From assembly GCA_965649765.1 (NCBI GenBank), contig OZ287759.1:43710001-43774000 (forward strand): a stretch of 64,000 nt of DNA, read 5' to 3'. The DNA comes from Bispira polyomma. Lineage: Eukaryota. Below are positions 32,395-54,310 of the stretch, piece after piece; the stretch's first letter is position 1, and each line of letters begins with the position of its first letter. Under the pieces are notes generated by a model. The model was not told where the DNA came from. It ran no database searches and saw only the letters and a program-made list of their open reading frames with translations. Both the position numbers and the translations under genes were made by a program.

Positions 32395-33383
32395 TTACCC
32401 AGAAGTAGGTTGGAGAGCAGATCTGAAGGAGTCAACAACCTGAAAACCAGTCTGTGCAGAATCTGTTATATACCTCCACACGCAGTCCGATGTCCAGGTG
32501 CCATGACGCTGGATGTCGTGGATGTTGACATTATTGTTAAACGCGAAAGTGGCACCTGAACGCCGGAAGGCATGAAAAGTGAGATTTAGATGAGCACATC
32601 CCAGGAGTTGCAGAATGTTTTTCAGATGGCGCCGTACCCTGGTGTCAGTCAGGGGAATCCAAGAGCCACCTAGCCTGTATTGTAAAAGGGGAGCATTAGG
32701 GCCAGAGTGGGTGAGGGCTAAAGCATTCTTCAAAGCAGCAACTGGGCACAGATTAGAATTTCGCAGTACAGGAATATTTAATAATTTAATCTGATTATTC
32801 GTCTGCATGGTCTTTGACCATTTAATCAATAAGGTAATGTAGCCAGGTTTAAAAAGCACATCCCCTCTGGCCAAGTGCTTGAGGGGAGAAAAAGTCGCCA
32901 CAGAGTGGGGACACAAATTTGACAGCCTCAGAAAACTAAAAAAGCTGTTTAGGTAAACGGCCTTAAAAATTTGGCCCATATAAGTGCTATCACACTTAGC
33001 CACTAGGGCAGTTAACAAGGGGATATCAAATATAGCCTTTAACTTTGCTTGCAGGGGTCTATTGACAGCAAGAGCCTTACTAAAGTGGCCTATACGGGGA
33101 TCTAAAAAACAGTCCACATCTATATGAAAGAGAATGCACTTAGCCTTAACGACCGAGAGGTGATTAGCGATTTGAGAAGCTGACATGTGATTAAAGCTTA
33201 AAAATTCTAGAAAAGATAGAATACCAAACACATTCACCTGATCAACTGGCCATTGCATGAAGATCCCAAAGGCTAAAAACAGCTTAAACATACTGTCTTA
33301 GGCTCTAGCTGTAGACTCCGCGAAGGCAAAGTGCTGTTTTTTACAGGCTCAGCTTCTAAGTAAAGCATCCAATGGGTGAATGT
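32395..33383 (-). pseudogene. tyrosine recombinase of element 2
   Basis: Catalytic R (FLRLSN), K (WSKT), HxxR (HAFRRSG), H/W (RHGTW) and Y (VWRY) are present; two in-frame stops lie in the 92 nt upstream of the ATG at 33291. Confidence 0.9.
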
Positions 33384-33418
33384 CTGAAACATAAGGTACT
33401 GTATAGACAAATCAAGGG

Positions 33419-35639
33419 TTATATTGTCTGGTCAATTTCCAGTAAAGTGACATCAGTCTCCAGCCAATTAACTGGGCCAGCCCATTGAGCCAGTAAGTAC
33501 TCATTATTAGAAGTTTTGTTCCAACGGTAGAGAAGGTCTGCAATTATGTTCTTTTTACCTAGTATATGGACCACTCTGATATCTATATCAAATTTACTAG
33601 CCCACATAAAGATATTTCGACTATAGGCAGCAAGCAAAGGATCTTGGGTGCGTCCTGTTTCTAGAATACTCACTACAGCTTGATTATCACATTTAAAAAG
33701 GATTCTACTCCCCTTCCAGACCCTGGACCATAGTTTCAATGCTACTAGTATGTTAATCATTTCCAGGGAGGCAATATTATCAGTGGTCATAGACTCGGGT
33801 ACTTGTAAGTTATAAACTTCGTTCCGACAGATCCCCCCATGCCAGTTAAGCAACAATCTAACTCAACTTGTGCATAGATGGCCTTATGTGCAAAAAAGGA
33901 AACCCCATTAAACTGTTGCATAAAGGTTCTGAACCAGTTCAGATCACGCCTAAATTCCTCAGTTACACAAAATCTGATCTTGCTTTGGTTATCCCTAAGT
34001 AACTGCAGCATTCGATTGAGAAATACTCTGGCATATCTTATGCACTTGGCCACATATAATAAAGACCCTAACAGGGATTGGAGTTCTTTCTTTGTACAAT
34101 ATTTTTTATTCTTCCAAGTAGCACATTTTTCCCTAATTTCGCTCATTTTCTCAGCCGGAATGGAAGTAGTGAAATTCTCAGTATTTATAAGTATACCTAG
34201 ACATACAAACCTGAGTACTAGGGGGCACGAGCTTTGTCTGACTTACTGTCAGCCCTAGCTCCCTCAGAAGAGCCTGCAACCTGATATAGGTTATTGTATT
34301 TATTGGAAGCGATACAGTCAAAAAATTATCTACGTAGTTGTGGACTTTGTGTCCTTCTGCCTTCATGATAAATCTGACTGTGTCTGACAAACGCTGAAAT
34401 ATAGTACTTCCATTTTGATACCCAAAGGGGAGACACTTATCGATGTAATATTGCTTCCATTTCAGACCTAGTAGATTGATGTCCCTGGGATTGATCGGCA
34501 CGTGCCTAAAGGCCCTACTCACGTCGACTTTAAATATGTGGCAACCTTTACCCAAGCTGGTGACCTCCTTAGTGAGGTCATCAATAGACAGATAGGACAA
34601 TATAAATTCTGTTTCGAGATAGGAAATTTGAGATGCACCTCCATTTACTGAGTGGCCCTGTGACCAACTCAGATCCACTATAACTCTCCTGTTAACAGAA
34701 CTGGATTTCTCTCGTGTCATCATAGGTGAGCAACGTAATTGTTTAAGAGGGGGTTCTTTAAAAGGGCCTAATATCGCCCCAAATTTACACTCTTCCTCAA
34801 GATAAGCTTCTATATGCTCTGGAAAACTATCAGCAGAACTATGATTGGGATTTTCGGTTTGACTAATTTCGTTTCTACACACATCCAAAGGGAAGCCATA
34901 TTTTACCAGCAATGGCAATTGCCAGTCCCAGTAGTCAGTAAAATAGTCTTTCCATTTGTCAGCATTTAATTGGGATTTTACCGCCAGTTGTAAGCCCTTA
35001 TAGTTATGTCTCCCATCCCCCCGCAGTTTAGAATGCATTTCAAAGACATCGAGACCATGATTTTTTGAGCCATTATCCAGAATTTTGCATCCCAGAGTTG
35101 TGAGAGGGGTAAACCCATAACTTACATTGTTCTGCTCTTTCCATTTTTGATGAGTTTCATTAGACAAGGCCTTGGCCAGCAAATCTCGTTTATTACGTTT
35201 CTGCTTGAGCTCTAACGCAGGAGGCAACTAAATCACCCAAATTTGTTTCCTTATGGGTCTTTATGCAAGGAACCTTGCCTTTACATTTGCCATTGACACC
35301 ACTGATTTTGTTAGCTATTGGTTGTTGAGGACCCTTATAGGCTTCCATACTTGCACTTCCACTACCCTTGACCTCCTCATTGCTGCCCAAGGCAACATTG
35401 GTTTGGCTGAGGGGGTGAAATCTATTATGCCACGCAGAAGTGCGACACGTGTTAATTTTGTTCGAATTTACAATGGTAACCCTTTGGTCCAACTCACAGC
35501 TGTTGCTTTTATGTCGCGTGGAAGGAACAAAGGGGAACTTATTGACACTATTTACACTCGGTTTTTTGTGAATGCGTGGGAGGACCTGCCTGTGCACTTT
35601 CTTTACACAGGTCCGAATTTCCCCCACACGTTCACTCAC
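33419..35639 (-). pseudogene. RT-RNaseH of element 2 (frameshifted)
   Basis: KVDVSRAFRHVP, CLPFG, YVDNF, LLGSLLYVAKC, CDNQAVV, ADLLYR spread over consecutive ORFs. Confidence 0.9.
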
Positions 35640-35868
35640 CTTGTCCTAATCACATGTATTTACAGTTTTTCCATCACCATATTTGCTTTTATTTACCTTT
35701 TTCAACGCTTTGCTGTAAGAATAACGCGGCCGTGTACCTTTACTGTGTGCAAGCATTTTAGCTGTCGCAGCTTTATCCAACAAGTGAAAATCACTGAATT
35801 TTGACTTATAAAAAGTTCGTGAATAGACATTAATTTCTTGATTTACACTGCCAAACTGCAGTGGCTAC

Positions 35869-36856
35869 TCAGTTTTTTAAATTTTTCTTGCTACAGGTGT
35901 TGGTCTTGTGTGTTCTCCCACAGGCTTCACACACGTGTTTAAAATAGGTATTGCCTGTTTTGTGGCTGTTGGGGAATTTGCATGAGCCATCTTGGTAAAA
36001 TTTACAGTTGGCAGTTGATGGCTTACCTTGGGCATTACTCTTGTTTGAACCACGACTGACAGTGACCGAGCTGTTGCTAACAATATGTCGCAGGGCATGC
36101 GCTCTGCGAAATCTGTCCAACTTATCAACGTCCGACCAGTTAAGCTTGTCCATCTCCATATGAGTAAGGACAACGGCATGACATGCTTTTGCAGCTTCCC
36201 AAGAGAAGTCCTCCGCGTCCTCCATCAAATTTGCCATTTAATCAAGCATTATCTCACGGGTTTCATTCGATTTTTCTTCATGAATTATACGGGTAAACCC
36301 ACACACCCACTGGTTTAAAGATAGGTCATCGTATGTGAGTCTGGACTTAAAGTTGCCTGTCAAAACATGATTTTACAGCCACTCGACAACGCGTTTGACT
36401 AGCACATCAACGCCCCCCCCCCCCTTTGAGATTTCAATTTACCTGGATTCGTATTTTCATTTAACTGTTTAAGCTCAGCTAATCTTACTTCTACTTGATT
36501 CTGAATCTGGGTGTTTTTCCGTAGAAAATCAATCCCTGGAATTATATTATCAGAGGGCAACGTTTCGGCACTGACATTGTTCACAGAACTACTAGCGATG
36601 CCAGGATTTACAATGTTATTGGACACACTAGAATTTGAAATACTACCTCCTGGTTTTTGTCTGCTGCCAAAGCCGCTTCTGTCTGTTGGACTCGTTGATC
36701 CATCCGCTCCATCATTTTTGCCATAGATTGTAATTGCAACAATATTTGATTAGACACTACGTTAGATTCCAAACCTGTGGTCATTGATGGAGCATTTGGA
36801 ACAATTAAAAACTGCCGGCATTGTAAAATACAATGAATAAAATCAACTAAAAACAC
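35869..36856 (-). pseudogene. gag-like ORF of element 2
   Basis: ORFs 36608..36856, 36399..36626, 35869..36237; EDAEDFSWEAAKACHAVVL and a C-terminal zinc finger. Confidence 0.8.
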
Positions 36857-38660
36857 TAAAACCAGTCAAAAAATCAGACATAAACATCGAATTTCCAAGA
36901 TGTCTGTCTAAAAGTTGCTTGTACTGTGAACGCTATTGTTATAATGGCGGGCAATTTGAAGACGGTCACTTTATATACTACTCGCAATCAATGAAGCGTG
37001 GAGAGGAAGACTGGTACCCCAAGAACTGAGATCGCCAGCGCTGGGGCACTGCCTTACAAATTATTTCAATGTTTCTTTCAAAGATTCTATAAAATTAGTG
37101 TTTCCAAATTTGTGTTTCTGTTTTAATTATTCTTTCAATTATTCCATTAATTAGGGTTTTAAATGTGTAACCATTCTCCTGTTGTCACCTAAGATATCAT
37201 GATATTTCCCCTTTCCAAATTCTAAATGTTTTAATATCTACCCTTTCTTTAAAATTATATTGTTTTCTGCATACACCATTGTGTGTAATTATTTTAATTC
37301 CATTATTTTAATTTGGTTCCATGTTATGTTTTGGTCTGTGTTTATTTTTATGTTGGCCGCGGCCACCAGTGGGCGTTCACATTAAAATTAATATGTCATG
37401 ATACCTCTTGTGTCAACTTGTATTTCATTTACAATTAATTATGCATCCATTTTACATACATTTTGCCATGTTACACCCAACTGGGTATCCCATTTCATCA
37501 ATAAAACTGTATTAAACTTTATTATTATGATTATTACCTCTTGTGTTTCACTTAACATGTGTTTTATGTATTATTGATTTAAAACAATTCTTTAGTGTGA
37601 CCTTGATTGACCTTTAATTTAGTTTAAGGTTCACTTTAAGTTAAAATCCCTTTTTGATAGTTGTCTTTTTATGCGGCAACTTAGATAAGATCTCAGTGCC
37701 TCAGCTGCAAAAGTCTCATCTTGGCCATGGTGTTTCTACTCTACAGTTTATCTCGACAGGTGTAAAGAACAGGAGATGTTCAGGTGTCACGCTACCACGT
37801 TTACTTGAACATACAAACTAGTATACTGATTTAGTATAATTTAAGCAGTACCTAGGTTGGGGATGTAAGATAGTACAACTTAGATTTGGACTTGGTTGGT
37901 GGGATTCCCAGGTGGTTGGGGACAGTTTGTTGGTCTGGAACCACAGAGGAAATAGCCGACAATAAGGTTGCAATGAGTTTGGTCATCCCCGAGTACTAAA
38001 AAATACTGAAATCAGGTGATAAGGGCAGACATATATAATGGTTGTTTGAGCCATAAATTAACCTGGTGGCAGCTACTTGACTATAAAGTCTCATACTTTA
38101 TTGTTTTGGCCTAAGAAGGTATCCCTGTTCCGCCACATATAAGTCATATTCAGGCTGAGCATACGTTAGAGAATACCGGCCCAGGATAATTAAACCCTTT
38201 GCAAAGAGACTACTGACTGTGCCTGAGAGAATATACAACTAACTACAGGCTGTCCAGAGCAAGGATGATTGTGGTAAATGCATTTTTCATACTGGCCAGC
38301 CATTTTACCTGTCTCTTAACCACAAGACAACAGCTGCCTGATGTGATGAATGACTTGGTGATGCCTTGTTGTTGCCTGCACAACATTATGCGTCTGCTTT
38401 ACCCCCAAGCACATCAAAGACTAGCCGATGATGAAAACCAGGATCATAGATTGGTCAGCGGAAGGTGGACAAATGCTGCAAACATGGCAGACATGGATGA
38501 ACCACAACACGGCAACTGACTGACTGTGGCAGCAAAAAGGTAAAGACTTTATTCAAAGCATTACTACAGCAGCCCAGCAGGTTCTGTGCCATGGCAAGAC
38601 AAGATGATCTAGAAGCTCCTACCACAGGGTTGTAAGACCCAGGCAGTAATGGCAAAAACA

Positions 38661-38681
38661 GGCTCTTTCTAGAGCCACCCA
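38661..38681 (+). promoter_or_regulatory. histone-mRNA-type 3' stem-loop after Harbinger transposase
   Basis: AAAAACA-GGCTCT-TTCT-AGAGCC-ACCCA, 48 nt after the stop codon. Confidence 0.85.
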
Positions 38682-39956
38682 ATTTATTCAAATACAGTTA
38701 TTAAACTGTTTTTGTTCCAAAAAACCTAAAAACAAAACAAAACACAACTGTCCCTGAAAACAACGACTAATGAATTCAAAATCAGTACACAAGGCAAAAT
38801 GCAACCCCCAAAAAATTCAGACAATGATAAGCCACCCACCCAACCCAAACACAAGATGAAGTAAAAAATTAAACAAAGTCTCACAATTGACCCCAACATT
38901 AAATTTTTTTAACCCTTTCTTGAAAGTACCCATACAATATTGTAGCCTGCAAGAGTTCCCAGCTCACATAAGATGCCGCTGAGGCCAAGGGAGGAAGCCC
39001 TTTTGGTGGTGGTTTCTACTAGAGCAGCTCCAGGCGCAGCTGGGTTCCCGGTGCTGTAGCTGTTGCCGGGTACTAGACTGGGGGGTTGATGTGATGGTCT
39101 GAGGTATTGGGGTAGCGTGAAAGTCTCCATCTGGGTTCTTTGTTGCCCGGAAGGACTACCTTTTTTCGCCTTCTTCTGCTGCTCCTGCTCTCTGTGCTCT
39201 TCAGACTTTGTGGTGTACTTCTGCACCATTAGGAAGCTGTCTGTCTTGAATCCATAAACTCCGGGTGAATTGTCTTGATTTAGGCCGAATCCAACCCGCC
39301 TAGGCATCTTGGGACCACACTTCAGTGGGCTTGTGCATGAACTCCTTCCACTGGATCCCCATGGTCTGGCTGGTCTCAGTCCTTTTCCTCAGGGGCACCA
39401 TCAGTTCAGTGACGGTAGAGATGGGTTTGGTCTTCTTTGCCAACCTCCTTCCAGTGTTAACTGGGGTAGGGCTCCTCACATCATTTGCACTGTCCACATC
39501 AATAACATCTCCTGGCTGGTCGCCGCGACTGTTTGTCCGGCTGTTCATTCTTTTAGAAGGAGGTTGGCTCATGGTCTGTTGCTGTGCATCCTATAGATGT
39601 GTTTCTCCAGGTAGGTCATCTTCAATTTTATCCATTTGGCCTTGTCTCCCATGTCGTCTGCTCCAGCGCCTGATTTGCCAGTCTTCCCTGGTACAAATAT
39701 TTTTACGTAAAAGTCACGCACCCCTGGTACCACCCCTTCAGCCTAGTCCCTGTCACCTTGTTCTCTATTGGTTTAACATGGATCTCTTCAGCCTTGTCCT
39801 GCCACATCCTTTTCTGAGAGTCTTTGTAGTCCGAGAACCCACTGCTCCACCCACTCCAGCAAAGCATCCTCCACCTTATTCTCCACAAAGAGTGGGGCAT
39901 TACGTTTCCTCCTCCCCTTCCCCTCACCAGGATCATCATGCCACTGCATACAGTTG

Positions 39957-40118
39957 ATCAAGGTTCTGCATTGAAACCAGCGGCCAACAGTAAGGAACTA
40001 CCACATTTCCCACATAGACATTGACGAGAGGCGAACTGGTGACCATTCAATCTCCAGAGGTGAGAGACCAGTGATTGTGAAGTACACTGCTTGCCTACCA
40101 CTATGCCACCGTGGTCCC
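39957..40118 (-). mobile_element. tRNA-derived SINE, 3'-truncated; same family as 49210-49466
   Basis: Reverse complement aligns with 49210-49362 (TTCACAATCACTGGTCTCTCACCTCTGG; TATGTGGGAAA; GCAGAACCTTGA). Confidence 0.85.
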
Positions 40119-42750
40119 TCACCATATAATGAAGCAATATATATGTATATATGCTTTCCCAAAATGTGCATTTAAAAAAATGTTTTGACAACTAAAGATG
40201 AGGAATGCCCTATTTATATGCTGTGTGTCCCGTTATTGGGGGGGGGGGGGCTTTGAAAGACATGGGGGAGGAAAGTGGTGGCTCAGGATGCCATGTCCTG
40301 TCACCGGAATGGCGTTGGAAGACATAGGGTAGAAAAATATGAATCTGGATGGAAACCTATTGTCACTGGATTACTCGGAGTACAAATGTATTACCAATGG
40401 ATTACCAACGGATTGCTTGTGACGGAAAAGGATTAGCACAGGATGGCTTCCAACATTAACAAAGCACCAATGGCACAGCTTCCTATTGTGATTGGAGTGT
40501 GACTGTTTAGTGAAAGGGGGAAACCGGAGCACAAAGGCTTACAATCGGTTAAACAACAGGCCGCTTGTGACTGGCTGTATTGTTTATCAAAATTTTATTT
40601 CATAATATTGCTGGTATTTCCAATTATGTAAAGTAAAAAAATATGTATGCATTCCATTGCCCTGACATCTAACTACATTTTGTCCCCAAACAATTCCCTG
40701 ATATATTTGGATTTTAATTTTTTAAAAACCTCATACTTGGGCCATGTGGTGCAAGAGGTGAAGTTTGTAATTGTTCTCTGGATATATTTAATTAATTTTT
40801 TAAAGAAAAAAACACACCAATGACATGTGCGTGACAAAATAAATGGAGAAAAAAGTTACAAATAGACATGCAAAGTTGTATTCAAATATATATTTGGAGT
40901 AATATATGGGCCCCAGTTTGTTCTGGATAGGCTCTGTACCTCTAAAAGCAAGCCGAGGCCGACACCATGCAACTGCAATGAGGAGACAAGCAGCTCTGTT
41001 GTGAGCTGTTTGGTGAGTAAAACACACTATCTTGATTACTGATCCGGAAATGACTTACATATTTTCATGAACAGCACACCCTTTTGATCGCTTCCTGAAG
41101 CGATTTTGAGTGATCTTTCATGACACGTTGTCACACAGACAGAGAAAATAGACCTCCGTTACATAACGACTGGACAAAGCGGGAACGCGAAAGGAACAGT
41201 GTGAAAGCCCCATAGAAACCTATCCTATTTGATTGCTAAAGTATTATTCATTAATATATGTTGCGTGTAAATAAGATCAATGTTCTCAGATTATCATAAA
41301 TATGTTGAAACAACAACACAATAATTCTTTGTTGTACATTTTCTATAAAAAAAGCATAGTTTCAGTTGTAGATAATTAGTAAAATGCAACTATGCTTACA
41401 TTAAACATCTGTATTATCATTATGTATATTCTAAACTTTTGATAAAAGTATGTTTGTAAATTACAAAAGAGCTGTAAAATACACATATATTAACTAGAAG
41501 TGCACTGAATAAACCACATACCTCCGCTATGGTGTAAATGCCAAAACGTGAAAAAATAATGGTTCCCCCATTTTGTACAGATAAGTTAAAAAATTTGATA
41601 TATTCTTCCATGGCTTTTACCCCATCCACTAGCAAACTATATGGTTCTTACATATCTGGATGAGCTCATATGCTTTGGTGATTGTAATATTCACAGACTA
41701 TTACAAACTCCTTCCACTCCAGCCAGTCAAATTCCACATAAGATCACTTCAAAAATCGAACTGGTCTGTGATTTAGATACAGACCCAGACGTATCAAAAA
41801 GTAGATAAATAAATTATTTGACGAATTTTCTTGTAGTAGGTATAAGGTAAAATAGTCATTAATGTACACAGTGATACTTGGCTTTATCCAGTGACATGCA
41901 CTTCAATTTCATGGTTCCTTCAATTAAAATCATTTCTGCCAAAATACCAAAATGCAAAACATATGCTGTTATATCAACTCGATACATATTTAATAGAGTC
42001 ACTGTCATAACCAAAACATTCATAACATTGTACAGAAACTTTCAATCAAATGCCTTTTCAAAATTAATCAGCATCAAGTGACTAGGCCAAGCATACCTTT
42101 AAGTTGTGTCTTAAGTAGCAAGTCATAGTTTGGTCTTGTATTTTCATTTATCAATCTGGACAATTTAAAAAAAAAATTTGATATGAAGCAGGCTCAATGC
42201 AAAGAAACAGGTAATCTGGTATGGTATGTCAAACTACCATAGCAATGCAAAGTGAAACTGATTTGCTCCCCTGAACAACTATTTGGAAACTATTGGAAAC
42301 TTGGATTTATCTGCATAATACTTTTGCAAAGCATAAGCATTATGCTGCATCTAACTTCTCTTGTTTAGATTATCACAAGGCATGTTTTTATTTATGTGGC
42401 TTGATTTTTGCCACAGCCAGAAGTACATCGAAACACACACCCTTCTTCACAATAAATATCGAAATATTTGTTGTCGTTTTACATATGCAATATCACACTC
42501 CCCAAACAATAAATTTACTGTATGCGGTACAATGCTTGCCAGACAACGTTGATTTATTATTGCCTGATCGGTCGCCCAACCAGATTTTCAGGATTCTTGC
42601 AGGTATTACAAATATATGTGTGAATAATGACACCAAAGTAAAATTTGAATCAGGCTCAGAGACATTCTTGGAGAGGGATAATTTAGTAAAAAGTAATCTA
42701 TCTTTCAGAGAATCCAAAGAAGAAATGGTGATGTGTTATGAATACTTAGT

Positions 42751-43099: not shown

Positions 43100-45748
43100 C
43101 AGTCAGTGTGCGATGTAACTGTGGTCGCGCTCAACTGCCGTGACTAACTCTTCGGTCCATCTATGAACTTGTAAAATTTAGATGCCCAACTTGCAAGTAA
43201 CTTTTTAAGGTTAATTTCTGATTAGTTGCGACATTTTACTCTCATATTTGATACATATTTCTTCATTTTCTAAGAGTTTTGCAAGGTCATTGTTGTTTAC
43301 CTTCTTTGTGAATCAATCTAAGAAGCATTTTCATTGGCTAAATACTGGGCTGTTGCTAAAATTCGTGGGCAATTCAAAATTCTCATATAAAATAGTAGAA
43401 TGACTTTGAATATATGAAGTGCCAAAGTTATTTCGCATTGATAAAAAATAATATTATATACTATGAATTTAACATTCATTCCCAAAGTAACACAATTTGT
43501 CTGTTGAATTTTGAGTGGTTGTCATTCGGAACTACTTGCATATTTAAAAGTATATAGGGTCAATCATGCTTACTATTTTGATTAGTAATACTGTGGGTGG
43601 GTAAAACTCGGAACTCCATTGTGAACTCCCTGGGAGAGCAAAATCGGCTAAATTGTGGCAGAAAATGTCTAGAAGTCGAATATGTGGCTATAAACTCACC
43701 TAGAAGTCTGGGAGGTGGCTGTAAAGTTGTATAGAAGTCTGGAAGGTGGCTGTAAAATTGCCTAAAAGTCTGGCAGATGACTATAAAATGGCCCGGGGTT
43801 CTGGTAAGTAGGTGCAACATTACTTAGGGGTCTGGAAACTGGCTGCTGTAAACTTGCCAATAGGTCTGCGAAGTGGCTGCAAAATTACCCGGAAGTTTGG
43901 GAAGTGGATGTTGATTTCCTAGAGGTGTGATAGGTTACTATAAAATTGCCTTGGTGTCTTGGAAGTGGCTGTAAAATTGCCACGGTTCTGGGAGTGGTTG
44001 TAACATTACTTAGGGATAAGTAAAGAGGCTGTAAAATTTCAGGATGTACACATCTATTTTAGCTCACAATGTCACTGTATATGTCTGTCTGCAAGCTTAT
44101 ATCTAGGTCTCATATAGACAAACCAGCAAAAAGAAGACACCACAAACATTTTTGTATCTATCAGTGAGTTTATGTTTCAACTTTGTTTCAGATTTGTCTA
44201 CATTCGAAGCACTTCGTTCATAACCCTGAGTATCCATAAGCATCAGTGGAGCTGCTGGGTACATTTTAGGATGTTTAAAACATTTGTGGCAGAAAGCTTG
44301 TTTGTGACGATTTTTGTGGGAGACGGGGCAGTTGCGCATACATCTTGATTAGTTTTAATTAGTTTTGGAACATTACTTATCAGTAGCAGGTTGTGTTAGC
44401 TTGTTGTACATTTGTGTCAAGACGTAGCAGTAAGTAACCATTCGTTTGTATTAGCGACGTATCAGTGGGTATTCCTTGGTATTTGTGATGTCTTTGTTTC
44501 TTATTGGTGGGGATTGGTGTCAGTGGGTGTTAGTGGTCGTGTCAGTTATGTGGTACAGGTTCATTTCAGATTATCCCAAAAGCACCACATCTTTGTGATG
44601 GTGGGATTGGGGAGGGTTTGAGGAGGTCTATTCGTGGATGAAAGTCCCCGAACCAGGATTTGTTAGATGCTACAAATACTGATGAATAAACATCTGTGTG
44701 AGATCAGGTCTTTGCTTACAAGTGCCGAATTTGTTCATATTTAGAAGAACTACCCGTGTTTATGAATTCATACAATGTCCAGACATTTATTGAGAAACCA
44801 TCAAATATACTATTACCAAAGCACTTCATCAAAAGTAGTTCAAATTAAACCTCAAAGAGTTAACCTCTACGTTTAACTGTTATATTGTGTTGACTTTACC
44901 ACAATTACATATTACAAATCTGTACATATGTATGACTTATGATGATTATGTGTATTGGTGGTGAAAATTTGGACCTGGCGATAAATAAAAAAAGGGGAGT
45001 AGCATTGATATAAAGCAACAGAGATATTCAAATATAATACCCCTGTTCCACTTAACCAATCATAGCTCCCAACCATCTCGATCTGATGATCTGGAGCTAC
45101 TCAGGGGTACAATTGGGAGTTGCTTCCGACTTATTTTTGGCTATCAGCAGCAATCGGGCCACTTGCTCAGGTTTTTAAACGTATTTGAAAACCTGTGCGA
45201 TAGGGTGACACACAATACCAATCAGGAGCAATTGGGAGCAATCGACTTATCGTTATGCCCAATGTTTTCAACGACCTATCTTTACAATCATCCCCGCCCA
45301 GGACCCAAATTGTGAGCAATTTTACAGAAAACCATTCTGAGTGATCGCGCCATCCCAATGATAGATTGGGAAGTCATCAACTTATCAGCCGTTGGTCCTG
45401 ACTTATCTTGTCATATGCTAAGAATAACTTGTTGGACTGTAAAGTTAACTTAGGCATGGTTTCCAATAGCATTGTAAAGATAACTCTTGAACACAACAAC
45501 TCAGGCCTGACAATGATAACTTGCGAGTGCATTTTTTTTGCTCACGAGTCAAATCGGAGGACCACAAACATATAAAAGGATACCATGACAGTAATCTTCA
45601 TCTCATTTAATTTTTAGCACCGAAGAGTACACATCAGAAAGTGGCAATTTTCATTGAATATATATTATAAGTTTAGGTCCTTGCTTTTTTGTTGTGAGTT
45701 ATAAGTTTAAAAGTTTTATATTGTACATTGTATATTTTTTGATTAAAT

Positions 45749-47142: not shown

Positions 47143-47163
47143 AAACCTTTTCAGGGCCACCCT
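47143..47163 (+). promoter_or_regulatory. decayed histone-type stem-loop after MADF-like gene
   Basis: AAACCT-TTTC-AGGGCC-ACCCT; loop, 3' arm and ACCC are canonical, 5' arm damaged. Confidence 0.6.
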
Positions 47164-47620
47164 AATGTTTTAAAAATATTATCCAAGCTGTTTGTAAATT
47201 TAAAAAAAAACCTCACTACAAGAAGCATACTAGCCCAAAAAAAAACTTATCATACGTAAACACATAACAAAAACAATACTTGGCCCCTCCCCATAGAAAT
47301 AAAAATACACTGTTAAATTTTCAACTTGTGAAAGCCTTTAAAATATAACTCTGTTAACAACATTGTATGTATATAGGGGCAGGTAGTTTTTGACATAAGT
47401 CTATTTGATGGGGACAACAACTAAAAAAAGTTGTATTTAAGTATTTAAAATATTTCTACTGGGAGAGGCTATTATTTATCAGAGTTGTATTTGAAGGGGT
47501 TTTAATTCTGTTTTTATTTGTGTGTGCGTGAGGTAATTTATTTTGTGGGGCCAGTTCGCTTTTTATAGTGAGGTTTTATTTTCATTTAACAAACAGCTCA
47601 GATAATGTTTTTGGAACATT

Positions 47621-47641
47621 ATGGTGGCCCTGAAGAGGGCC
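47621..47641 (-). promoter_or_regulatory. histone-mRNA-type 3' stem-loop after Harbinger transposase
   Basis: AACCAATC-GGCCCT-CTTC-AGGGCC-ACCAT on minus, 25 nt after the inferred stop TGA (47669-47667). Confidence 0.88.
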
Positions 47642-47666
47642 GATTGGTTCTTCTTGCAGCTCAGCT

Positions 47667-49209: not shown

Positions 49210-49466
49210 GGGGCCGCGGTGGCCCAGTGGTTAGCAAGCATTGCGCTTCACAATCACTGGTCTCTCACCTCTGGGTGGCGCGAGTTTGAATCCCGTCGAT
49301 GCCTATGTGGGAAAGGTGGTAGTTCCTCACTGTGGGTCGTTGGTTTCTCTGCAGAACCTTGACCGACTGTATGCAGTGTTTCCTCCAGCGTTTCCAACTA
49401 CCCGTCCCAATATAACCTACTAAAAGGTACTAGAGTGGACGTTAAATATCTAAATTCAAATTCAAA
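49210..49466 (+). mobile_element. full-length tRNA-derived SINE with 14-bp TSD
   Basis: A box TGGCCCAGTGG, B box GAGTTTGAATCC, (AATTCA)n tail; TTAAGAACGGAACC duplicated at 49196-49209 and 49467-49480. Confidence 0.95.
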
Positions 49467-52589: not shown

Positions 52590-54310
52590 GAAACACGACA
52601 CTGAAGGTAACACATGTGCAAGACCCAACAGTAGGGTTACTTGCCTAGGCATCGATTTCGACATTAACAAGGGCATCATTAGCATAACACAGGAAAAATT
52701 TAATGAGATACTTGAACAATGTGAAGACATTTACCACAGGAAATGGATTTTGCGCAACAAATTCCAGTCAATTTTGGGAAAATTGCTATATGTCCATAAG
52801 TGTGTGCACTCTGCTAGGGCTTTTATAAATTGATTACTTATGGAATTCAGAAACAACCCCAGAGCTAGTCGATTCATAATTAATAACAATATTCATAGTG
52901 ACATTGAATGGTTCCTAAATTTCCTTCCAAAATTCAATGGTGTCGTATTTATGAATCCTATAGCCTTTAGTCAGGAGCACTCTGTATACATTGGCGCTTG
53001 TTTGAAAGGAATGAGGACGATTTGGAGCAACCAAGTTTATGCCATTCCTTTTCATAATGAATACGGTCAAGACATTTCCATAGTGCACTTGGAAATGGTT
53101 AACATCGTTGTAGTTCTTCGCGTATGGGGTAAACAGTGGGCTTACAAACAGATTTCAATTAATTGCGACAACATGGCCGTGGTATTGGTTGTCGGGTCTA
53201 ATAAGACCAAGGATTCTTTCTTGGCTGACTGCTTAAGGGCAATATGGCTTATCACTGCCACATTTGACATCACACTTTCCATCCAACTTATACAAGGCAA
53301 GGCAAACACAATAGCTGATGCATTATCCAGACTGCATTCGGATAATCCACCCAGTGATACAATAATTAGGGAAGTTGAAAATACTTGTATTTGGCATCAA
53401 ATTCCAATACAGCATTTTAACCTAAATTTACACATATAATTGTGGGTGCCACCCACTACACCCACCAACAAAGAAATTTCAGTGCGATTTGTCAATTTTC
53501 TCACATAACACTCTAGCATTATATCTTAGGAGTATAAGACATACCTCCCATTTCAAACCACATCCCAAAGGGATATTTGAGATTCAACATTTAGTACTAA
53601 TTTTCAAAACTTGTGAAATTCTAGATGACCCCATACTGTATAGAGCCATTTTTCTCTGAGCGTTCTTTGGGTTCCTGCGAATGTCCAATCTGGCACCCCA
53701 CTCCACTCAGAAAGTTGATCCTTCCAGACACTTGCTTCGAAAGGACATCATTTTTGGCCCACCAGGGGCACATATTATCATAAAGTGGGCCAAAAACTTA
53801 CAAAACAGAGATCAGGCACACATTATTCAAATTCCACAGCTAGACAATCACACACTGTGCCCAGTCACAACACTCTGAAACTTGCTTAAATCTAGAACTC
53901 TCCCTGAAACTGCTCCCCTCTTTGCAGCCTTGTCACCTACGGGTAATACTATTACGGATTCTCATGTGAGGAATGATCTTAATCCACATTGGCATACCTA
54001 CCCAATCTCACAGTTTCCATACATTCAGAAGATCTGGTGCAACTTTTGCCTTTAATAATAATGTATCCCTTCAGAACATTACGTCTCATGGTCTATGGAG
54101 GTCTTCAGCCGTGTGGACTTATCTCAACACACAAGGCTGCTTCGATAGTATCCCTTACCTTTGCCTCTGTTATCCCTAAATCTTTCTACCTTGGCTTGGG
54201 TTCTTTAAAATCTTTTTAAAATTCTAAATTCTACCTCTGTTTAAATCTTATATCTGTACATAGCATTACTAACTTGTAGATAGAATAAAATTCTCAAACC
54301 ATCTTTTACT
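52590..54310 (+). mobile_element. 5'-truncated tyrosine-recombinase retrotransposon 3 (related to element 1)
   Basis: RT end and RNaseH (52588..53439, CDNMAVV, ADALSR); YR MSNLAPHS, IIKWAK, HTFRRSGAT; 3' UTR resembles 28030-28125. Confidence 0.92.

Follow-up and report, generated by a model that had tools for sequence, protein, structure and literature searches.

Histone-type 3′-end cassettes on the genes of PIF/Harbinger transposons in the genome of Bispira polyomma

Here, we describe a fragment of a PIF/Harbinger transposon in the genome of Bispira polyomma, in which the transposase gene is followed by a histone-type stem-loop, an ACCCA tail and a histone downstream element (HDE). Judging by the alignment of related copies, the element is a dead fragment of a family (family A) whose active master would have carried this histone 3′ cassette on both of its genes, those for the transposase and for a MADF protein. 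[quoted passage not shown] The reading builds on the sequence of the cassette, its position and spacing, its match with the host histone genes, and its presence at the ends of both genes as well as in several families and other organisms. The fragment lies in a 64,000-nt stretch (the window; assembly GCA_965649765.1, contig OZ287759.1, positions 43,710,001 to 43,774,000), to which coordinates refer unless stated otherwise (Table 1); labels such as L007 denote other copies or sequences.

The window copy and its family

The element with the window hairpin is a PIF/Harbinger transposon by its transposase, MADF gene, inverted repeats and TAA duplication. The transposase piece matches Pfam PF13359 (DDE_Tnp_4; E 5e-6) and is 82% identical to the family consensus protein, the nearest named relatives of which are HARBI1/ALP1-like. 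The first-pass annotation had attributed this protein to a Harbinger diverged from another copy at 47641, and rightly so, given that the transposase of the latter family (family B) shares 40% of its amino acids with that of family A. The MADF gene was recognized in the family A copy L003 (PF10545, E 8e-6). The left and right terminal inverted repeats agree at ~20/23 nt across copies, the window keeping the right end only, and a TAA target site duplication flanks both ends of copy L013, most single ends being TAA-flanked as well. The DDE_Tnp_4 transposase, the MADF gene, the terminal inverted repeats and the 3-bp TAA duplication (L013) are all shared with PIF/Harbinger transposons as described in PMC9179366, a source with no mention of a stem-loop; by contrast, both genes of family A end in a histone stem-loop and downstream element, which most of the relatives tested lack.

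The window copy extends over ~38181-41212 and is heavily damaged. Its transposase piece contains stop codons and a frameshift, the 5′ two thirds of the gene and the left end are lost, and other family copies match the window only from 38181 onward. The 3′ end of the MADF gene, together with its own stem-loop and HDE, was removed by a deletion of ~450-600 bp near 38935-38950. The possibility that this copy is an active element was rejected on account of the truncation and the stop codons. Family A is represented by at least dozens of copies that are 73-83% alike (a lower bound) in searches that covered the 1.035-Gb animal genome. The copies lie ~10% from their consensus, so that the family is old and, among the copies seen, dead. 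Their alignment yields an intact 413-aa transposase with the three acidic motifs kept, together with a 425-aa MADF protein, likewise intact and encoded on the other strand; both are single intronless open reading frames.

The surroundings are rich in other mobile elements. A separate dispersed repeat of ~1.06 kb (37058-38115; 78-85% to other copies) abuts the truncated left end of the Harbinger, and a DIRS-like element with pieces of a tyrosine recombinase and a reverse transcriptase occupies 32395-37060, its end region having many genome copies at 91-97%. Elsewhere in the window, there are open reading frames for a LINE-type endonuclease (11524-12357, minus strand) and an RNase H-like protein (RVT_3; 52840-53439, plus strand), as well as an element that contains a 31-nt tandem repeat and is present twice, in opposite orientations (23140-23385 and 43668-44031). 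The two copies of the short element inserted in the MADF gene (Table 1) are 80% alike and lie in or beside both Harbingers.

Table 1. Features of the window that bear on the histone-type cassettes
Feature	Position	Strand	Remarks
PIF/Harbinger DDE transposase, 3′ remnant (family A)	38181-38612	+	about residues 274-413 of the 413-aa consensus
3′ UTR ahead of the stem	38613-38660	+	48 nt in the window copy, 58 nt in the family consensus
Histone-type stem-loop GGCTCT-TTCT-AGAGCC	38661-38676	+	loop TTCT in the window copy
ACCCA tail	38677-38681	+	identified by sequence; cleavage predicted just past 38681 by the histone rule
HDE-like 20-mer	38689-38708	+	begins 13 nt past the stem; 15/20 to host H3
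Convergent MADF (Myb/SANT-like) gene remnant	38939-39941	-	residues 31-380 of the 425-aa intronless consensus ORF
Unrelated insertion of ~180 nt within the MADF gene	39942-40120	.	another copy at 49210-49378
Right terminal inverted repeat (family A)	41190-41212	-	followed by TAG; family flank mostly TAA
Decayed cassette past the family B MADF-side gene	47143-47190	+	inverted repeat of the transposase-side end
Stem-loop and HDE past the family B transposase	47600-47646	-	RF00032 37.3 bits
Stem-loop and HDE past the MADF gene of a third Harbinger	63376-63422	+	RF00032 25.9 bits; PF10545; HDE 15/20

The first-pass annotation placed the hairpin correctly, 48 nt behind the stop codon TAG (38610-38612) and directly before ACCCA. 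A cmscan of the whole window gave three matches to the histone stem-loop model RF00032 (38656-38702, plus; 47600-47646, minus; 63376-63422, plus), of which that at the family A hairpin scored 31.9 bits (E 2.9e-5), just below the gathering score of 34 bits. The hairpin is present in the minimum-energy fold, with a z of -3.3 for a 76-nt region that includes a second hairpin. The latter is formed by the downstream element (38692-38712), and the family consensus could adopt the same structure by using G-U pairs. This second hairpin may cover the U7 site, or it may be without significance. The stretch 38619-39195 is identical, with 0 differences, in contigs of two public runs, which come from one study and possibly from the source sample; because these contigs agree with the assembly, an assembly slip is an unlikely cause of the TTCT loop. 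Among RNA runs, no match to the sequence was found. The rule by which the cleavage position was predicted is that for histone mRNA ends (PMC10730174, 10.64898/2026.10.14.759114).

The cassette and the host histone genes

In the family consensus, the hairpin has a 6-bp stem and a 4-nt loop, with G-C at pair 2 and U at loop position 3, and is identical to the hairpins of the host H1, H2A, H2B, H3 and H4 genes. It is present in the other copies of the family as well: 20 of the 21 copies retain a loop, which reads TTTC in 13, TTTT in 5, TTTA in 1 and TTCT in the window copy alone, and in the remaining copy the loop is deleted. The C at loop position 3, which the first-pass annotation had singled out as unusual, is indeed private to the window copy, TTCT in a hairpin context occurring once in the genome, and the consensus loop over the 21 copies is UUUC, within the UUUN form that the annotation had proposed to look for. 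TTCT as a variant of the family was accordingly rejected. Given that U at loop position 3 is diagnostic for SLBP binding (10.64898/2026.10.14.759114), the window copy, having lost it, is probably inert. A 10-nt deletion in the UTR ahead of the stem is likewise private to this copy.

Within the family, the hairpin is conserved at 88.7%, the coding region at 92.6%, the upstream UTR at 91.8% and the downstream stretch at 90%, so that the expectation of a hairpin more conserved than its adjacent UTR was not borne out. We take this evenness to be the neutral decay of dead copies, which would decay evenly and hence display no excess at the hairpin; the comparison is thus uninformative on the active element.

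The likeness to the host histone genes continues beyond the hairpin. In these genes, a purine-rich 20-nt element begins 13 nt past the stem and reads CAAGAACA, then TTA, then T[G/A]AG; the start at +13 is the same in the histone genes and in families A, B and C (the third Harbinger). The consensus HDE of family A agrees with that of H3 at 16/20 positions at the transposase end and at 18/20 at the MADF end, and the elements of families B and C agree with the best host histone at 15-17/20. In a test with the position held fixed, designed after a weaker sliding test, at most 8 of 50,000 shuffles were as good. The sliding test, against a crude histone consensus, gave p 0.03-0.04 for family A, 0.78 for B and 0.0002 for C, its weakness being due to one-base offsets that vary among histone genes. 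Judged by its position, the 20-mer appears to correspond to the HDE, with which U7 forms base pairs in histone pre-mRNAs (PMC10730174). The host encodes an SLBP gene; a search for its U7 snRNA gave no match with RF00066, with which the control was also silent, nor with a guessed pattern.

BLAST comparison of the family UTR with the histone loci confines the likeness to the stretch from the first base of the stem to the end of the HDE (41 nt at 90%, 50 nt at 86%), outside of which matches occur only in A-rich runs. Upstream of the stem, identity to histone genes is at background (0.23; 0.27 between histone genes), and the two-box profile of family against histone is the same as that of histone against histone. 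No AATAAA stands directly behind the transposase cassette in the family A consensus. The host histone arrays are located at C4:54.70-54.81 Mb and C1:30.81-31.09 Mb; the H1 genes form a tandem array of their own with a 1727-bp period, separate from the core histone array with its period of ~4.8 kb. By eye, the host histones look spiralian. Overall, the cassette resembles that of replication-dependent histone mRNAs (RF00032, SLBP, U7 snRNP) in its 16-nt hairpin, ACCCA, spacing, HDE and intronless reading frames, and differs in that it is attached to non-histone genes of a dispersed mobile element, in the 15 nt between the MADF stop and the stem and, in the window copy, in the loss of U at loop position 3.

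A second cassette follows the MADF gene in copies L007, L014, L015, L017, L019, L026 and L027, the two convergent cassettes lying less than 1 kb apart. The distance from stop to stem in the consensus is 58 nt for the transposase (48 in the window) and 15 nt for the MADF gene; compared to the 25-60 nt cited for regulated decay (10.64898/2026.10.14.759114), the former falls within the range, whereas the latter falls below it. Within the element, the two 3′ ends are inverted repeats of each other over ~120 nt (98/113 identical), the pre-stem UTR of the transposase being homologous to the final codons of the MADF gene and to its UTR. The stretch ahead of the stem is thus coding in the MADF gene and untranslated in the transposase gene, which suggests that the cassette end was copied from the former gene to the latter. 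Mutually inverted convergent 3′ ends are seen within each family (A copies L007, L014, L019 and L026; in family B, window 47146-47243/47541-47638), and in L007 the two cassette ends stand nearly back to back after an internal deletion.

Cassettes in other families and organisms

Family B shows the same doubling of the cassette. Its transposase and that of family A, 40% identical, are followed by UTRs that have no upstream sequence in common, and both keep the hairpin. The first-pass annotation, which had called the two UTRs unalignable, thus holds upstream of the stem (28% identity) and fails downstream, where both contain a histone downstream element. Neither is the T-A stem pair of family A the alternative form, as had been stated: all five host histone genes have T-A, and it is the C-G of the copy at 47641 that is the variant. 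On the same ground, we rejected T-A as a derived pair. At this pair (pair 4), the change between U-A and C-G involves both sides of the stem, with 0 mismatches in 16 distinct rows; as the rows are related to one another, and some were chosen for their hairpin, the count does not amount to a probability. That structure, beyond sequence, was conserved across Harbinger lineages, as the first-pass annotation had proposed, appears to be supported by the retention of the hairpin in families A and B and by this two-sided change, with the caveat that cassette bearers are scattered over the tree of transposases.

Across the genome, 8 of the 9 best dispersed RF00032 matches are Harbinger ends, the remaining one being a histone cluster. 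There are 656 exact hairpins of the C-G form, those listed being dispersed, and 0 matches to the reversed pattern. Exact links from a transposase end to a hairpin number 82, with at least 6 different intervening UTRs as judged by eye; most of the family B examples were selected for the hairpin.

Among ten relatives chosen by protein likeness only (from oyster, limpet, mussel, crinoid, mudskipper, shrimp and scaly-foot snail, plus three metagenome sequences), with one copy or element read for each, nine are without the cassette, which is therefore dispensable for Harbingers. In Gigantopelta aegis, a decayed hairpin lies 83 nt past the transposase stop (L091:4816-4836). The convergent Harbingers L095 and L098 have AATAAA signals and no cassette. 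A U2 snRNA gene adjoins a Harbinger fragment of Anneissia (L094:237-428).

A pattern joining the V-P-W-Q end of the transposase to a hairpin recovered seven metagenome contigs, a set that is thus hairpin-selected; all seven encode Harbinger transposases and have perfect hairpins, 26-77 nt past the stop. These transposases are 42-61% identical to that of family A, five of the seven having full open reading frames of 435-459 aa. Their downstream elements are unlike the host's (5-12/20), each contig having its own. The sequence L112 belongs to the unclassified contigs in a metagenome associated with a foraminifer (PMC6783311). No linked match was found in viral contigs. On a transposase tree of 63 rows, from which near-duplicate and distant rows were dropped and in which the bootstrap is not fully settled, the cassette trait changes ~6 times, at least 3 of these changes being required by branches with good support, and its distribution shows no more clustering than that of shuffled labels. 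The data are compatible with a single clade of A and B (p-AU 0.73). We consider repeated gains and an early single origin with subsequent losses to be equally likely.

Function of the cassette and its implications

We propose that, in the active element, SLBP would bind the hairpin of the pre-mRNA, the host U7 snRNA would pair with the downstream element and CPSF73 would cut past ACCCA, these being the steps of the histone pathway (PMC10730174, 10.64898/2026.10.14.759114). The transposase and MADF mRNAs would then have no poly(A) tail, rely on SLBP for their translation and share the turnover of histone mRNA. The cassette, of ~50 nt, probably came from a histone gene of the host and would subsequently have been duplicated from the end of the MADF gene to that of the transposase gene. 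The benefit could be that the two proteins are produced during S phase, or else in oocytes and cleaving embryos. In cut-and-paste transposition, as known from Ac and P elements, copy number rises when the gap is repaired from the sister chromatid or when the element moves ahead of the replication fork. That expression at these times, when cut-and-paste raises copy number, was the benefit seems to us about evenly poised. More broadly, Harbingers of several animal lineages may have captured the histone 3′ cassettes of their hosts repeatedly and independently, each tuned to the U7 of the host, making theirs the first natural class of protein-coding, non-histone mRNAs processed by U7 and SLBP and free of poly(A), with transposition timed to S phase or early embryos; this is a tentative extension that we would sooner doubt than endorse. 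Speaking against the U7/SLBP reading are the 15-nt spacing of the MADF gene, the blank U7 searches, the weak outcome of the sliding test, the ~10% decay of all host copies seen, the hairpin-selected nature of the foreign set and of most family B examples, the nine of ten relatives without a cassette and the location of U7, the snRNP being concentrated in histone locus bodies (PMC10730174), away from which the dispersed transposons lie.

One alternative, in our view unlikely, is that the cassette is mainly a short, strong terminator between convergent genes, by which double-stranded RNA and small-RNA silencing are avoided, the timing being incidental. It fits the arrangement of two convergent genes with a cassette on each, less than 1 kb apart, and the missing AATAAA behind the family A transposase cassette, and, being still based on U7 cleavage, it overlaps the reading that we prefer and differs from it in the benefit. 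However, the cassette-free convergent Harbingers L095 and L098 cope with AATAAA, and the positions diagnostic for SLBP are kept, beyond the needs of termination alone. A somewhat less probable scenario is passive capture, in which an element acquired the end of a histone gene through a single accident and the piece then spread without function, through hitch-hiking and exchange between families. Donors were plentiful, with hundreds of histone genes in the genome, the 50-nt likeness is contiguous and includes the spacer, conservation within the family shows no excess at the hairpin, and the copying between the two ends of one element demonstrates that exchange does occur. Yet chance capture hardly accounts for cassettes that are always on the sense strand, 15-77 nt past the stop, on both genes and bounded by the functional boxes, for a two-sided pair change between families 40% alike, or for other organisms that carry other downstream elements, with at least 3 changes on the tree.

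Slightly less credence still attaches to the idea that the cassette mainly restrains the transposon, destabilizing or repressing its RNA through decay outside S phase or through U7 repression, with less harm to the host as a result. U7 represses human HERV1/LTR12 through HDE-like motifs that lack a hairpin (10.1101/2023.08.25.554787), and histone mRNAs are broken down as S phase ends (PMC12775136). This U7 repression of LTR12 is the nearest precedent, in that a transposable element contains a motif complementary to U7. Unlike family A, in which a full cleavage-type cassette stands at the 3′ ends of the genes of a DNA transposon, LTR12 belongs to a retroelement, with motifs that are close to the start of the transcript and affect transcription; in the Harbingers, hairpin and element follow the stop with the spacing of cleavage, and the cassette-bearing families reached hundreds of copies. 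Finally, the sub-threshold score of the window hairpin and its wrong loop position 3 could speak for a chance hairpin or an assembly artefact, which we regard as scarcely credible in the face of a perfect family consensus, of agreement between the assembly and two public runs, and of a chance expectation of ~1e-6 (~9e-7 per 100 nt for a pattern of such quality, fitted post hoc).

In a literature search, we came across no account of histone stem-loops on the genes of Harbingers or other transposons, a mention in older work (Davila Lopez and Samuelsson 2008; Marzluff and Koreski 2017) being possible, and transposons are not mentioned in an October 2026 survey of the histone 3′ machinery. The present locus adds a family, 40% identical to family B in its transposase, whose consensus hairpin is exactly that of the host, together with a host-specific HDE, an internal doubling and a scattered distribution. 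Replication-dependent histone mRNAs are described as the only known non-polyadenylated cellular mRNAs (PMC4604434). If the proposed SLBP/U7 processing is true, a transposon breaks the rule that histone mRNAs are the sole cellular mRNAs finished by a stem-loop and U7, and poly(A)-selected RNA-seq would miss its transcripts. RF00032 matches in such genomes are not safely histone genes, and hundreds of extra hairpins could compete for SLBP. Moreover, the dispersed copies would offer a natural test of U7 processing away from histone locus bodies, and the expression of the transposase during DNA replication would provide a route for copy gain by a cut-and-paste element.
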